64,000 nt of DNA. Source: Leucoraja ocellata (Eukaryota). Below the pieces are notes generated by a model that saw only the letters and a list, made by a program, of their open reading frames with translations, was not told the DNA's origin and did not search any database. The translations under genes were made by a program, and so were the position numbers. The stretch covers positions 7,316,001-7,380,000 of the forward strand of contig JAWMAR010000070.1 in the NCBI GenBank assembly GCA_036785375.1. Reading direction: 5' to 3'. Shown in pieces: positions 3,429-46,108 of the stretch. How positions within the stretch are numbered: the stretch's first letter is position 1; every line of letters begins with the position of its first letter.

Positions 3429-3968
3429 TCAGTAGAAGCTTTCAAAGACTGACAGCCAGACCCATTCTTCACAAGTCCTATTATCTTGAGTGGACCAGAC
3501 ACAGGTATATAACCCTTCATCTTTCTGTTCTACGCCTGCCAGGATCAACGAGGCATCATGTATCACATGGATATCATTATGCTTGAAACGCCAGCGGCCC
3601 TCCGATCGCTTCGCTATGTCAGGAGTTTTAAGACCATACCTGGCAATCGTAACATTGTATTTTCTCCAAATAACATTCAAGAGTTGATCGTATTCGCGGG
3701 ATACTTTACAGGGCAGCGTAATGATACTACCCAGAGCTGCATCGAGCATATCCTCGTTAAATGATGCACCGTAATCACTGTCAGAATCTGACTCGTTCGT
3801 GCATCTTGGAAACCGTTCATTGGTGACTTGCCGAGGGGCCCGTGCGTTCCGCCCGGCCAAGTTTGCTTCCTCTCCCCATTCTCTGGAGATCGGACCTGTT
3901 CCAGTTACGGAGACTTGCCACACCATCTCCACAAGGACCATGAATCCTATCCATCTCTGCAGTCCCAT
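3429..3968 (-). CDS. Secreted single V-type Ig-domain protein, copy 1 (type A), 179 aa; whole CDS in one exon
   Basis: ATG at 3968 lies 4 nt after acceptor cccacAG (3974-3973). Hydrophobic leader MGLQRWIGFMVLVEMVWQVSVTG; Ig V motifs ITLPC, VIW, DASLIL, DEGLYTC; stop straight after the G strand; no TM segment. Confidence 0.85.
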   Translation of the reverse strand: MGLQRWIGFMVLVEMVWQVSVTGTGPISREWGEEANLAGRNARAPRQVTNERFPRCTNESDSDSDYGASFNEDMLDAALGSIITLPCKVSREYDQLLNVIWRKYNVTIARYGLKTPDIAKRSEGRWRFKHNDIHVIHDASLILAGVEQKDEGLYTCVWSTQDNRTCEEWVWLSVFESFY

Positions 3969-4545
3969 GTTCCTGTGGGTGAAACAATGGGTCACCTTAT
4001 TGCAACTCAGTAGGATTCATGATGACATTCCCTGAACCCGCCCAGAGTTGGGGAATCGAGAACCAGAGGACATCGGTTTAAGGCGAGGGGGGGAAAGATT
4101 TAATGTGAAACTGAGGGGTGACTTTTTTACACAAAGGGTGGAGGGTGTTTGGAACGAGCTGCCGGAAGAGGTAGTTGGGGCAGGTACTATCACAATGATT
4201 AAGAAACAGTTAGACAGGTACATTGATAGGACAGGATTAGAGGGGTAAGGGCCAAACGCAGGCAGGTGGGTCTAGTATTGATGGGACAAGTTGGTGGGCG
4301 TGGGCAAGTTGGGCCGAAGGTCTCGCTGTGACTCTATGACTCCATCACTTGTCCCACCCCGGTCATTCCTCCTTCTCCCTGGTCCTGTCTAGCAGACGGT
4401 ACAGAAGCTTGAAAGCGCGCACCACCAGACTCAGGAACAGCTTCTTCCCCTCTGCTATCAGGCTTCTGAACTGGGGGAACAGTGAACAGAGACAATCCCA
4501 CCCCCATCACTCACAGACACTTGAAGGATCCACAGGGTTGGTTAC

Positions 4546-4700
4546 CAGCTCCGGAGTCTCCACACAGGGTGACGGGGTCGGTCTTGTTCTCATCTCCTGC
4601 CATCGCTCGCTCCTTTTATACCGACTCCCGGCTTCTCCTGCCCCTCATTGTCTGCCCTCACGTACATTCAACCAATCACTGCCTCCCACGGAGCATTGGC
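4546..4700 (-). promoter_or_regulatory. Promoter and non-coding exon 1 of Ig gene copy 1
   Basis: Minus-strand TATAAAAG at 4620-4613; CCAAT boxes at 4672-4676 and 4695-4699; donor ctg|GTAACC at 4545; intron 4545-3973 ends at cacAG. Conserved in all five copies. Confidence 0.7.
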
Positions 4701-5130
4701 CGGAGTCAGCCGCGACCTCTCCACCCTCTGCCAAACGTGTCGTTGCATCAGCCGTTAATGTTTAACAAGAACAACGTCATCCCAGCTGCCAGCGGACAAC
4801 CAGGCGCCCCACACATCCTGCTTGTGTCTCCACCACGTCTCGTTCTGGTCAACCCAGAGATTCGAGTTTTTCGCGGCCATCAAAGAGGCGTCGAGACTGC
4901 AGCGGTGAAGGAGATATCGTGACCGCCATGGGCAGAAATCCTGGGGGGGGGGAACAGGGGGCATGTCCCCCTATGCTTTGGGAGGTGGGGGACGATTCCC
5001 CCCCCCGCCCATGTTTTGTGTTCCGGACTTTATCAGACACTTTCTATGGGCAGAATCGTCCCGTTCGCGGGGCCTTTCAGCGCCCGAGCGGCTTATAATC
5101 AAACTGCTGCATCGAGGCGATCGAGGCTCC

Positions 5131-5881
5131 CATAGAAACATAGAAAATAGGTGCAGGAGTAGGCCATTCGGCCCTTCGAGCCTGCACTGCCATTTAATAT
5201 GATTATACTGATCATCCAACTCAGTATGCCATAAAGTCCTGCCATCCCAGGAATCAGTCTGGTGAACTTTCTCTGTACTGTCTCTATGGCAAGAATGTCT
5301 TTCCTCGGATTATGAGACCAAAACTGTACGCAATACTCCAGGTGTGGTCTCACCAAGACCCTGTACAACTGCAGTAGAACCTCCCTGCTCCTTTTGCTAT
5401 GAATGCTAACATACCATTCTCTTTCTTCACTGCCTGCTGCACCTGCATGCCCACTTTTAATGACCGGTGTACCATGACACCCAGGTCTCGTTGCATCTCC
5501 CCTTTTCCTAATCGGCCACCATTCAGATAATAATCTACTTTCCTGTTTTTGCCACCAAAATGGATAACCTCACATTTATCCACATTATACTGCATCTTCC
5601 ATTCATTTGCCTACTCACCCAACCTATCCAAGTCACCTTGCGGCCTCCTAGCATCCTCCTCACAGCTAACACTGCCCCCCATTTCGTGTCATCTGCAAAC
5701 TTGGAGATGTTGCATTCAACTCCCTCATCCAGATCATTAATATATATCGTAAATAGCTGGGGTCCCAGCACTGAGTCTTGCAGTACCCCACTAGTCACTG
5801 CCTGCCATTCTGAAAAGGACCCGTTTACTCCTACTCTTTGCTTTCTGTCTGCCAGCCAGTTCTCTATCCACATCAATACCA
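5131..5881 (-). mobile_element. Truncated CR1 (site 1)
   Basis: catagaaa tail and RT residues FADDTK; empty site cgaggctcccgatgttgaa at ~32334-32352. Confidence 0.85.
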
Positions 5882-44402: not shown

Positions 44403-44798
44403 CCCCAACCATAGACTGATTACCCTCCTCCCGTGCGGGAGGCGCTACAGGTCTCTCCGTTGCTGAACCAGCAGGTCCAGGAACAGCTTCTTCCCTGCGG
44501 CTGTTACATTACTCAACACTGTACCTCGGTGATTGCCCCCGGACACTCATCCACCAGATAAAAATTGCATTACTACGACTGTATGCACGTATATTTATTT
44601 ATTGCTCATATTCTATGTCGCTCTTCTAGGGAGATGCTAACTGCATTTTGTTATCTCTGTACTGTACACTGCACAATGACAATAATGTTTGCATCTGAAT
44701 CTGAATATGAATAAGCTGCCCAAGTGAAATTTGAGTGCTATCCCTCCAATTTGCACTTGGCCTCACTCTGACAGTGGAGGCGGCCCAGGACAGAAAGG

Positions 44799-45371
44799 TC
44801 AGTGTAGGAATGGGGGGAGTCCGTGGTGAATCATTGGGAGGTTTCTCTCTATTTTCAGCCATGTCAATACATGACATTTCCCATGATGAGAAGTGGACCA
44901 AATGCAGGTATATGTCCCGGCATCTTTCTCTTGTACCCCCCACAGGACCAACGAGGCGTCCCGATTTGTGAATAAATCGTTATTCACGAACTTCCAGTTG
45001 GGATACGATCCCTTATATCCCACTGAAAACCAACTGTGATATGTTGCAATGGCAACACCGTCTTTTTTCCATGTGACGAGGGTAGGTTTACTGTAATTCT
45101 TGGATAGTTTACAGGGCAGCGTAATAGAACCACTCGGAGACACAACGGCAACCTGCAGACTAATGATTAAAGGGTGATCACCAGCAGAGTCTGGCTTGTC
45201 CGTGCATCTGGGAAGCTGTTCATTGTTGACTTGCCAATACGCCCGTGCGTTCCGCCCGGCCAAGTTTGGTTCCTCTCCCCATTCTCTGGAGATCGGACCT
45301 GTTCCAGTTGCGGAGACTTGCCACACCATCTCCACAAGGACCATGAATCCTATCCATCTCTGCAGTCCCAT
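44799..45371 (-). CDS. Secreted single V-type Ig-domain protein, copy 5 (type C), 190 aa
   Basis: Same leader; ITLPC, VTW, DASLVL, DAGTYTC. The TGA used by the other copies is out of frame here, giving a longer tail. Confidence 0.8.
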   Translation of the reverse strand: MGLQRWIGFMVLVEMVWQVSATGTGPISREWGEEPNLAGRNARAYWQVNNEQLPRCTDKPDSAGDHPLIISLQVAVVSPSGSITLPCKLSKNYSKPTLVTWKKDGVAIATYHSWFSVGYKGSYPNWKFVNNDLFTNRDASLVLWGVQEKDAGTYTCIWSTSHHGKCHVLTWLKIERNLPMIHHGLPPFLH

Positions 45372-45952
45372 GTTCCTGTGGGTGAAACAATGGGTCACCT
45401 TATTGCAACTCAGTAGGATTCATGATGACATTCCCTGAACCCGCCCAGAGTTGGGGAATCGAGAACCAGAGGACATCGGTTTAAGGCGAGGGGGGGGGGA
45501 AAGATTTAATGGAAAACTGAGGGGTGACTTTTTTACACAAAGGGTGGAGGGTGTTTGGAACGAGCTGCCAGAAGAGGTAGTTGAAGCAGGTACTATCACA
45601 ATGATTAAGAAACAGTTAGACAGGTACATTGATAGGACAGGATTAGAGGGGTAAGGGCCAAACGCAGGCAGGTGGGTCTAGTATTGATGGGGACACGTTG
45701 GTGGGCGCGGGCAAGTTGGGCCGAAGGTCTCGCTGTGACTTTATGACTCCATCACTTGTCCCACCCCGGTCATTCCTCCTTCTCCCTGGTCCTGTCTAGC
45801 AGAAGGTACAGAAGCTTGAAAGCGCGCACCACCAGACTCAGGAACAGCTTCTTCCCCTCTGCTATCAGGCTTCTGAACTGGGGGAACAGTGAACAGAGAC
45901 AATCCCACCCCCATCACTCACAGACACTTGAAGGATCCACAGGGTTGGTTAC

Positions 45953-46108
45953 CAGCTCCGGAGTCTCCACACAGGGTGACGGGGTCGGTCTTGTTCTCAT
46001 CTCCTGCCATCGCTCGCTCCTTTTATACCGACTCCCGGCTTCTCCTGCCCCTCATTGTCTGCCCTCACGTACATTCAACCAATCACTGCCTCCCACGGAG
46101 CATTGGCC
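45953..46108 (-). promoter_or_regulatory. Promoter and exon 1 of Ig copy 5
   Basis: TATAAAAG at 46027-46020; donor at 45952. Confidence 0.65.

Follow-up and report, generated by a model that had tools for sequence, protein, structure and literature searches.

The window analysed here, a 64,000-nt stretch of Leucoraja ocellata DNA numbered from its first letter, contains five minus-strand open reading frames (3429-3995, 13560-14123, 19779-20342, 29179-29733 and 44799-45398 in the ORF list). Read from a conserved MGLQRW methionine, they encode 179, 178, 178, 178 and 190 aa (A1, B1, A2, B2 and C, respectively), and tblastn of the window with eight family proteins as queries matched these five loci only. 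The V parts are 92% identical between A1 and A2, 80% between B1 and B2, and 35-46% between types, which together with the ORFs bears out the preliminary description of five intact paralogs in the order A, B, A, B, C. Expansion by tandem duplication, also proposed there, is supported by the A+B pair, which is present twice, ~16 kb apart. The features of the array are as follows.

3152..3157, minus strand: A1 AATAAA, 272 nt after the stop
3429..3968, minus strand: A1 coding sequence, type A, 179 aa plus stop; hypervariable mature-domain part ~3830-3432
3973..4514, minus strand: A1 intron, 542 nt, GTGAGT...CACAG; holds a SINE-like repeat
4515..4699, minus strand: A1 promoter and first exon, by direct reading; last exon base 4515
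4699-4695, 4676-4672 and 4620-4613, minus strand: A1 CCAAT, inverted CCAAT and TATAAAAG, respectively
4603-4601, minus strand: A1 upstream ATG, 17 nt after the TATA box
13560..14096, minus strand: B1 coding sequence, type B, 178 aa plus stop
14101..14661, minus strand: B1 intron, 561 nt
14662..14846, minus strand: B1 promoter plus exon 1, which ends at 14662; CCAAT box 14846-14842, TATA box 14767-14760
19779..20315, minus strand: A2 coding sequence, type A, 178 aa plus stop
20320..20866, minus strand: A2 intron, 547 nt
20867..21052, minus strand: A2 promoter plus exon 1, which ends at 20867; CCAAT box 21052-21048, TATA box 20972-20965
29179..29715, minus strand: B2 coding sequence, type B, 178 aa plus stop
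29720..30264, minus strand: B2 intron, 545 nt
30265..30447, minus strand: B2 promoter plus exon 1, which ends at 30265; CCAAT box 30447-30443, TATA box 30369-30362
35370..35540, minus strand: sixth cassette, reduced to promoter sequence with the CCAAT region; without TATA, exon or coding part
44799..45371, minus strand: C coding sequence, type C, 190 aa plus stop
45376..45921, minus strand: C intron, 546 nt
45922..46106, minus strand: C promoter plus exon 1, which ends at 45922; CCAAT box 46106-46102, TATA box 46027-46020

The CCAAT box, inverted CCAAT box, TATA element, GTGAGT donor and CACAG acceptor do not vary among the five copies, confirming for each the TATA/CCAAT promoter, first exon, intron (542-561 nt) and ORF of 178-190 aa that had been described. 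A conserved GTTAA-N3-TTAAC palindrome, presumably HNF1-like, lies beside the CCAAT and TATA elements; such an element would suit a protein that liver or gut epithelium discharges into plasma or mucus. Transcription of A1 would start near 4590. Exon ends agree with the NCBI models of relatives (tblastn), and a two-exon structure spliced at these sites is predicted. The A1 splice had been placed at 4546 to 3972; the acceptor at 3972 holds, but the NCBI little-skate models use as donor the equivalent of 4515|4514 (TCT|GTGAGT) and not 4546 (CTG|GTAACC). Two sequencing runs covering the stretch behave as genomic DNA, their contigs crossing both A1 splice sites unspliced. The window region is rich in transposons, and the last codons and stop of type C sit inside a transposon-derived fragment (44817-44716). 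The array sits among chitinase genes with CBM14 domains (the neighbouring chitinase CBM14 lies at 60216-60440).

Protein architecture and relatives

The full-length relatives are eight predicted proteins, uncharacterised and each from a batoid (little skate, Rhinoraja or an electric ray), so that 13 family proteins, including the five window copies, can be compared. It is a multigene family so far seen only in batoids (skates and electric ray). In each window copy the ORF begins with a predicted signal peptide, continues through ~25-35 conserved residues containing RxxR, and closes with one V-set Ig domain. All five score 30.9-42.4 bits against Pfam V-set PF07686, above its gathering cut-off of 26 bits, while the electric-ray member P0071 falls just below it (25.8 bits). 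The B-strand Cys, C-strand Trp and D-x-G-x-Y-x-C are present in each of the five, with strand labels set from sequence landmarks alone, and the Trp and the DxGxYxC Cys are invariant across 12 skate proteins. The two canonical Cys are 68-69 residues apart in the window copies; the V-set B-F disulphide usually spans 65-75. Exactly four cysteines occur, at aligned positions, in 13/13 family proteins, and the second pair (Cys56 and Cys166/168 after the FG loop) probably forms a link between the N-terminal arm and the G strand.

The signal peptide is predicted to be cut at MGLQRWIGFMVLVEMVWQVSA|TG, the start codon being placed from sequence alone. Its hydrophobic core, WIGFMVLVEMVW, has a mean hydropathy of 1.8 and is followed by V-S-A|T; the hydrophobic run covers ~12-16 residues and includes one Glu. 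At least one RxxR falls within residues 40-61 in 13/13 proteins, but the exact site varies: type C retains only R40-R43, having lost R43-R46, and 'W40' paralogues retain only R43-R46. Propeptide cleavage at such an R-x-x-R convertase-type site would leave a mature part of ~130 residues (13.5-16.7 kDa; predicted pI 4.8 to 9.8), in which a short N-terminal arm precedes a single V-set domain. All 13 proteins, gene models included, end just past the G strand, and in these reading frames neither a C2-type domain nor a TM anchor follows the V domain (5/5 copies stop, without a donor motif; 13/13 proteins). With no membrane anchor the domain should exit the cell as a soluble protein, and the product is probably secreted. 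The earlier picture of a leader, a spacer and a single V without C, TM or J is thus upheld across three batoid genera. A J-type F/W-G-x-G is missing, with no G-x-G in the G strands CEEWVWLSVF, CELLMQLVIS and CHVLTWLKIE, as is a CACAGTG heptamer beside the coding end on reading the 120 nt after each stop; both absences argue against rearranging antigen-receptor V genes (Ig, TCR, IgNAR). Membership among the VCBPs was also rejected, each protein giving one Ig match and no CBM14 match.

The closest known counterpart of the V domain is the nectin/PVR-type membrane-distal domain, from which it may derive; the sequence match is weak (E 1e-3 to 1e-9). Against the PDB, 23 of the 29 matches listed for P0071 are PVR or nectins and two more are CD96 (best E 3.2e-9), and the NCBI name of this electric-ray protein is 'nectin-1-like'. 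The best single-stretch matches were PVR domain 1 for B2 (E 4.4e-6), nectin-2 for A1 (E 2.5e-4) and PVR/nectin-2 D1 for the family protein P0005 (1.6e-3), with other Ig proteins scoring nearby for the last two. CD226, PVR and nectin-2 were among the top 10 in a family-profile search. V identity to the electric-ray member is 23-33%, and the framework kept over this distance includes the two Ig Cys, the Trp, DASL, DxGxYxC and the extra Cys pair. The preliminary description had not recognised the family; its V domain can be placed nearest to PVR/nectin domain 1. It had also put the array forward as a candidate new system, but the genes are already annotated publicly as uncharacterised proteins and are therefore unstudied rather than unseen. 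The interface of the PVR family is described as an AX6G 'lock' in C'-C'' and a T(Y/F)P 'key' in the FG loop (PMC10486284). Neither motif occurs in the five window copies (B2 reads KYP at the key); in the whole family AX6G is carried by 3/13 proteins (P0005, P0006 and P0071) and T(Y/F)P by 1/13 (P0071, as TYP). Nectin-style binding therefore cannot be assumed for the window copies.

Conserved cassette and divergent mature domain

Divergence is distributed very unevenly along each gene. The non-coding 5' cassette (892 nt) differs by 1.0-2.0% in all 10 pairs and the A/B 3' flanks by 0.9-5.3%, whereas the V coding part differs by 34-42% in nucleotides between types, so that a segment of ~400 nt differing by up to 42% lies within flanks that are 98-99% identical. 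Between types, dS reaches 0.48-0.72 in V, whereas the prepro part shows 0-0.11. The near-identity of promoter, exon 1, intron, signal/pro part and A/B 3' flank is read as concerted evolution, in which gene conversion or unequal exchange may have homogenised the cassette. V lineages are common to different species: type C shares 93% V identity with little-skate P0002, and the two have the same tail.

The mature domain is under diversifying selection, a conclusion supported by a dN/dS above 1 in one recent pair, B1-B2. Their V parts differ by 34.5 non-synonymous and 2.5 synonymous changes (dN/dS 4.17), an excess with Fisher p 0.006-0.035 and, when set against the synonymous share observed between types, binomial p 0.0004-0.045. 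Of the 29 residue differences, 19 fall in the 40 residues of C'-C'', D/DE and FG. For A1-A2, dN/dS is 1.37 on 12 changes and not significant, and between types it is 0.58-1.15. With this gene architecture, nature offers a clean example of diversifying selection operating only a few bases away from concerted evolution.

Possible functions and comparison with known systems

The favoured interpretation, held with slightly better than even confidence, is a batoid multigene family of secreted, diversifying single V domains derived from nectin/PVR that form a germline binding repertoire. The TATA/CCAAT promoter would drive a short, probably untranslated 5' exon, to be spliced to a single exon bearing the entire reading frame. 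After removal of the signal peptide and convertase-type cleavage at R-x-x-R in the conserved segment, the anchor-free V domain would leave the cell in soluble form. With the cassette kept uniform, only the part coding for the mature domain would have diverged deeply, positive selection being focused on C'-C'', D/DE and FG. Such germline-encoded soluble binding domains may be aimed at fast-changing targets, probably in defence; pathogen surface or attachment proteins are possible targets, and opsonin, neutraliser or nectin-type receptor decoy are possible roles. Rapid change of this kind is typical of binding proteins engaged in an arms race. Expression and a recognition function are both extrapolated from the DNA, and the evidence favours immunity no more than another fast-evolving extracellular role. 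More tentative, and rather doubtful at present, is the wider proposal of a second batoid humoral system beside rearranging antibodies, purely germline-encoded and built from tens of tandem genes for nanobody-sized, secreted, nectin/PVR-derived V domains, with cassettes that are constantly homogenised while positive selection diversifies the mature domain alone. Many viruses grasp nectin/PVR domain 1, so in that case the family proteins could act as soluble decoys or neutralisers.

The proteins might instead be secreted with the animal's own molecules as targets, acting as soluble ligands or antagonists of nectin/PVR or lymphocyte receptors, or as reproductive or chemical-signal proteins, in which case self-recognition, sexual conflict or signalling would have driven diversification rather than pathogens. 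Nectin/PVR D1, from which the V domain would descend, has other family members as natural partners (PMC10486284); AX6G is kept by the electric-ray and two little-skate members and TYP by the former, and positive selection with tandem expansion is also reported for reproductive and pheromone families such as the rodent ESP peptides. This is unlikely, though it deserves consideration, as the window copies lack both interface motifs and the range of mature-part pI suggests many different targets. Considerably less probable is that the copies, swept along in a repeat-rich segmental duplication, have fallen silent, are decaying or are artefacts of gene prediction, with dN/dS near or above 1 reflecting relaxed constraint. 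Between-type ratios near 1, the transposon-rich surroundings, the cassette reduced to a promoter stub and zero depth over 3344-3865 in two small 'RNA?' runs all fit decay, but very little room is left for it by five ORFs that stay open at 34-42% nucleotide divergence, by framework residues conserved to the electric ray and by a B1-B2 non-synonymous excess that is significant and not mere parity.

Two further explanations concern the ends of the protein, and both are improbable. Translation might start at the upstream exon-1 ATG, turning the hydrophobic segment into an uncleaved signal-anchor preceded by ~30-35 residues and displaying V as a type II membrane protein. All six NCBI little-skate models begin MAGDENK..., in frame into the main ORF, and the ATG and frame are found in 4/5 window copies, where the 30 codons match the little-skate proteins at 97-100% identity. 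However, a 1-nt deletion in exon 1 of B2 breaks this frame while its main ORF is intact and positively selected, and the Rhinoraja model begins at MGLQRW. The usual spacing from TATA to transcription start is ~30 nt, so an ATG just 17 nt past the TATA box would precede the start of the transcript; the short, Glu-containing hydrophobic run and the V-S-A signal-peptidase-type site also point to a cleaved leader. Comparably improbable is that the ORFs are first coding exons of ordinary single-V receptors, joined by a hidden donor, inside the V exon or shortly before its end, to TM/cytoplasmic exons. All copies share downstream DNA (~0.6-1.7 kb past the stop in A and B, ~3.5-4.7 kb in C) that could conceal short exons, but GTRAG is absent from the last 60 nt of every CDS, AATAAA follows 196-298 nt downstream of the stops, and all 13 proteins or models from three genera terminate right past the G strand (2-16 codons past it in the five window ORFs). 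The 3' end of type C is unrelated and transposon-derived, yet type C stops within 16 codons, as does its little-skate counterpart. Among 150 matches listed in a library-wide profile search, two were single-stretch and full-length, both of them small family proteins.

Among living lineages that have antibodies and T-cell receptors, the cartilaginous fishes are the oldest, and V domains of the nectin/PVR type often figure in discussions as relatives of antigen-receptor ancestors. If the preferred reading of a secreted repertoire is true, a large, fast-diversifying family of single V domains would represent a new vertebrate route to soluble recognition without rearrangement and would stand beside the protochordate VCBPs. 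Its significance hinges on the proteins being made and exported, in which case V domains of ~14-17 kDa that stand alone by nature and carry an additional disulphide would also be of interest as binding scaffolds.

Several known systems share parts of this organization. Carp SITR is an IgSF immune-type receptor without a transmembrane region, belongs to a multigene family, like the batoid proteins, and is secreted upon parasite stimulation (PMC3031540). It differs in having two Ig domains, with a CD300-like V, and in being a teleost macrophage protein, and the abstract mentions neither a conserved prepro cassette nor a hypervariable mature part (PMC3031540). VCBPs are secreted, germline-encoded, diversified V-type Ig proteins that do not rearrange and serve gut immunity (PMC4757023; PMC4008424). 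The batoid family, with predicted secretion, resembles them by description only, as diversified V-type proteins encoded in the germline, and its position among CBM14 chitinase genes is a likeness of map position only; VCBPs combine two N-terminal V domains with a C-terminal chitin-binding domain, whereas each batoid protein has one V and no chitin-binding part. Cone-snail toxins, amphibian skin peptides and snake-venom PLA2, the last known for 'accelerated evolution', come from precursors whose prepro part stays constant while the mature part is hypervariable. In the batoid genes, too, conservation is much higher in the signal/pro part and the non-coding flanks than in the mature coding part, the boundary lies at the predicted processing site, and dN exceeds dS among recent duplicates; the likeness is limited to the mode of gene evolution, as those precursors yield enzymes or short peptides where the batoid genes encode Ig domains, and there is no sign of toxicity here. 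With nectin/PVR (CD155, together with CD226, CD96 and TIGIT) the family shares the V-set DASL...DxGxYxC framework and the best solved-structure matches for every member tested, and the electric-ray member retains both 'lock' and 'key'. Unlike nectins and PVR, which are V-C2-C2 transmembrane proteins, and TIGIT, which is V-TM, the batoid proteins consist of one anchor-free V domain equipped with a conserved pro-like segment and an extra Cys pair.

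The gene array and its repeat-rich setting

Five minus-strand genes, each encoding a single V domain, lie in the window in the order A, B, A, B, C, and the A+B pair is duplicated about 16 kb apart. The three types are defined by the V part, which is 92% identical between A1 and A2, 80% between B1 and B2, and 35-46% between types. All five predicted proteins exceed the Pfam V-set cut-off of 26 bits (30.9-42.4 bits), and a tblastn search with eight family proteins over the 64 kb matched the five ORF loci and nowhere else. Together with the reading of the ORFs, this bears out the five intact paralogs and the gene order given in the preliminary description.

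Features of the array and its neighbour (residues counted from the shared methionine, MGLQRW)
3429-3995, minus strand: A1 ORF, type A, 179 residues
13560-14123, minus strand: B1 ORF, type B, 178 residues
19779-20342, minus strand: A2 ORF, type A, 178 residues
29179-29733, minus strand: B2 ORF, type B, 178 residues
44799-45398, minus strand: C ORF, type C, 190 residues
35370-35540, minus strand: sixth cassette, a promoter-only remnant, CCAAT region 98-100% identical to the other cassettes
4754-4766, 14901-14913, 21107-21119, 30502-30514, 35470-35482 and 46161-46173: GTTAA-N3-TTAAC palindrome in the six cassettes
49792-50085, 53507-53764, 58144-58515, 59109-59345, 59580-59852 and 60216-60440, plus strand: chitinase exon ORFs

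Every ORF stops 2-16 codons past the G strand, in keeping with the earlier claim that it ends right after the Ig domain. GTRAG is absent from the final 60 nt of coding sequence in all five copies, and AATAAA follows the stop at +272 in A1 and A2, +298 in B1 and B2, and +196 in C. The 16-residue tail of type C, also present in its little-skate counterpart, ends within a transposon fragment (44817-44716) that matches three element copies at 72% identity. Head-to-head with copy C stands a plus-strand GH18 chitinase gene with a C-terminal CBM14 (exon ORFs 49792-60440); about 3.7 kb separate the C promoter from the first chitinase exon seen.

Mobile elements and repeats are interspersed with the genes. 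An intact 933-aa LINE ORF2 (8302-11103, plus strand), with an endonuclease/exonuclease/phosphatase domain and a reverse transcriptase, lies between A1 and B1; it may be young and possibly active, and fragments of related elements surround every copy. Another repeated element has intact ORFs of 246/247 aa at 23398-24141 (minus strand) and 35746-36486 (plus strand), which gave no Pfam match at E 0.001; the element may be similar to the nuclease end of Penelope-like elements. It is a fragment of this element that supplies the stop and last codons of type C, and the sixth-cassette remnant is truncated beside the copy at 35746-36486. Between B2 and C, a 2.2-kb direct repeat (32545-34737 and 38801-40999, 97% identity) contains plus-strand ORFs of 127-145 aa without a Pfam match, and portions of the repeat are found again downstream of B1 (11.4-12.9 kb), A2 (18.3-19.1 kb) and B2 (27.0-28.5 kb). 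Three N runs (61506-61766, 61886-62288 and 62741-63072) fall in a GC-rich, low-complexity stretch.

Promoter, splicing and start codon

The cassette (promoter, first exon, intron and signal/pro part) is near-identical among copies. An invariant block 5' of each ORF comprises CCAAT, an inverted CCAAT, TATAAAAG, an ATG 17 nt past the TATA box and a GTGAGT donor. The intron that follows is 542-561 nt long and ends in CACAG, and in all five copies the main ATG lies four bases inside exon 2. Public gene models of the little skate use the same GTGAGT donor and CACAG acceptor; by tblastn, their residues 1-30 fall on 4603-4514 and the remainder starts at 3972. The splice from 4546 to 3972 proposed earlier is thus upheld at its acceptor, and its donor is unused by these models.

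The six cassettes share the GTTAA-N3-TTAAC palindrome, presumably HNF1-like, about 135-150 nt upstream of the TATA boxes and flanked by TGACGT and TGATGCAAC motifs. No further match occurs in the 64 kb, where 0.02 would be expected, and all six derive from a single ancestral site. With at most one mismatch allowed, a stricter consensus fits A1 alone, which rules out an exact HNF1 consensus in all the promoters. An HNF1-like palindrome would suggest expression in liver or gut, and is treated as a lead, since it represents one ancestral occurrence.

Public models disagree on the start codon: all six little-skate NCBI models begin at the upstream ATG (MAGDENK...), whereas the Rhinoraja model begins at MGLQRW. 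In exon 1 of B2 (region 30317-30326) a one-base deletion breaks the upstream-ATG frame and leaves the main ORF intact; the upstream ATG there opens a 30-codon ORF whose TGA stop is created by the exon junction, immediately ahead of the main ATG. The usual spacing from TATA box to transcription start is about 30 nt, so that an ATG at 17 nt would go untranscribed. Because of the broken B2 frame and this proximity to the TATA box, a start at MGLQRW with an untranslated exon 1, as the preliminary description held, is favoured. Exon 1 and exon 2 were each examined separately.

Four sequencing runs were retrieved, none of them recorded as RNA. Contigs from two of these, X1 and X2, tested on 2300-4900, continue unspliced through the two splice sites (3918-4068 over the acceptor, 4448-4795 over the donor), and are therefore genomic DNA. 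Two small runs guessed to be RNA have zero depth over 3344-3865, leaving the V exon uncovered. A contig of one of them, X3, covers 3866-3960, the signal-peptide stretch shared by every copy, then runs upstream into 50 letters absent from the window, and the junction is not at an AG acceptor.

The predicted protein and the origin of its V domain

The N-terminus reads MGLQRWIGFMVLVEMVWQVSA up to the likely cut and TG beyond it, with a hydrophobic core (mean hydropathy 1.8) and V-S-A preceding the cut. The segment after this leader (beginning TGTGPISREWGEEANLAGRNARAPRQ) is nearly invariant among skates and bears one or more R-x-x-R sites in every one of the 13 family proteins, the five window copies and eight batoid relatives. 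Beyond it the chain runs through Cys56 and an acidic stretch into the V domain. The cysteine count is four in each of the 13 proteins, and the positions align: the two canonical ones (separated by 68-69 residues in the window copies), Cys56, and one just past the FG loop. A second disulphide, we infer, would join the N-terminal arm to the G strand. The predicted product past the last RxxR has 123-147 residues (13.5-16.7 kDa, pI 4.8 to 9.8), and the number of N-glycosylation sequons varies from 0 to 3 per protein.

Word-based searches of 5.8 billion proteins, a collection from which the window's own proteins are absent, returned the eight relatives and no others. Leucoraja erinacea accounts for six (LOC129708937, -39, -41, -42, -45 and -46), and Rhinoraja longicauda and the electric ray Narcine bancroftii for one each; their public names are 'uncharacterized protein' or 'nectin-1-like'. 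The genes are thus already in public annotation, without an assigned function; no description of the family was found in the literature searched, supplements and most subscription journals lying beyond that search. Profile searching of the whole library gave 1893 matches at E <=0.001; among the best 150 of these, only the skate cluster (P0001) and the Narcine protein (P0071) matched over the full length in a single stretch, and the other entries were multi-Ig proteins. The type A V domain searched alone gave 2 candidates, neither significant, and the structure Atlas neighbours of P0001 are generic V-set only. As far as these libraries see (annotated genomes, and the best 150 of 1893 matches), the family appears confined to batoids.

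The kind of V domain is indicated by PDB sequences. Against all of them, the Narcine member has 29 matches, of which 23 are to PVR or nectin-1, -2 or -3 and 2 to CD96. PVR is the best match of the Narcine member (3.2e-9) and B2 (4.4e-6), and the best single-stretch match of the skate protein P0005 (1.6e-3), for which pIgR is higher as a summed score; the best single-stretch match of A1 is nectin-2 (2.5e-4). The top PDB-side matches of the family profile are JAML, CD226, MXRA8, PVR and nectin-2. By sequence comparison, the V domain is judged to descend from nectin/PVR domain 1. An AX6G 'lock' together with a T(Y/F)P 'key' marks the interface of the PVR family (PMC10486284). Both motifs are present in Narcine, and AX6G in two little-skate members; each of the five window copies lacks both. 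Because both the architecture and the two interface motifs fail, the proteins are not filed as nectin/PVR family members. The preliminary description did not recognise the family as Ig, TCR, IgNAR, B7/butyrophilin or CD300; its V domain is now placed near PVR/nectin domain 1, and its position outside the nectin/PVR family stands on architecture and motifs.

A rearranging Ig, TCR or IgNAR V segment is rejected, as the G strand carries no G-x-G J motif and the closest matches are PVR and nectin. So is a GPI anchor, since only 2-5 residues follow the G strand in types A and B, and the tail of type C is transposon-derived and not hydrophobic.

Divergence, selection and proposed function

Nucleotide comparisons, which rest on the five window genes, separate conserved flanks from a divergent core. 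Over the 892 nt from promoter to main ATG, all ten pairs differ by 1.0-2.0% regardless of type, with a figure of 1.2-7.1% for the prepro coding part. In the sequence encoding the mature domain, copies of different types are 34-42% divergent, B1 and B2 10.4%, and A1 and A2 2.7%. The A and B copies have 3' flanks that diverge by 0.9-5.3%, and the flank of C is unrelated to them. In 60-nt steps, identity is 98-100% up to about codon 50-56, where the pro/mature border is predicted, and falls there to 43-79%; in A and B copies it is back to 85-100% just past the stop codon. Between types, dS is 0.48-0.72 in the V part versus 0-0.11 in the prepro part, and the V lineages are therefore old; the V part of type C is 93% identical to its little-skate counterpart. 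The simplest reading is concerted evolution, by which the flanks would have been homogenised recently.

The V parts of the recent duplicates B1 and B2 differ by 34.5 non-synonymous and 2.5 synonymous changes (dN 0.132, dS 0.032, ratio 4.17), a non-synonymous excess with a Fisher p of 0.006-0.035 depending on rounding. Gene conversion from an unseen divergent copy predicts the between-type synonymous share of 20-29%; 2.5 of 37 were found (p 0.0004-0.045 for two or three), and this low count argues against simple import from such a copy. With strands named from sequence landmarks, not from a structure, 19 of the 29 residue differences lie in C'-C'' (8/18), D/DE (6/14) and the FG loop (5/8), and none in E/EF. 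Other comparisons counsel caution: A1-A2 gives a ratio of 1.37 from 12 changes, and pairs of different type give 0.58-1.15. Duplication, part of the tandemly expanding repertoire proposed earlier, is evident in the A+B pair, and positive selection is seen in B1-B2. Unitig depth over the 5' cassette versus the type A V part (283-336 versus 7-12 in X1; 439-1084 versus 25-53 in X2) is a rough sign of tens of copies, depth not being copy number.

In the function proposed, each cassette would supply transcription, export and probably convertase processing, and the variable part a distinct small V domain per gene, so that soluble domains of tens of kinds might be released together. Binding of fast-changing partners is suggested by the deep divergence, the positive selection in loop-rich segments, the broad spread of charge and the expansion in tandem. 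Host defence, as opsonin, neutraliser or decoy of a nectin-type receptor, is considered most likely on this sequence evidence; roles as a self-directed ligand or antagonist, or in reproduction or signalling, are ranked second.

We would rate the family, by analogy, among the secreted germline IgSF recognition families, with carp SITR and VCBPs as the nearest described concepts. The neighbouring chitinase prompts the comparison with VCBPs, although it amounts to a map position only; membership is rejected, given the single V domain and the lack of a chitin-binding domain. The unusual marks of the family are its one nectin-derived V domain and a gene design of constant prepro and variable mature parts, reminiscent of toxin precursor genes.
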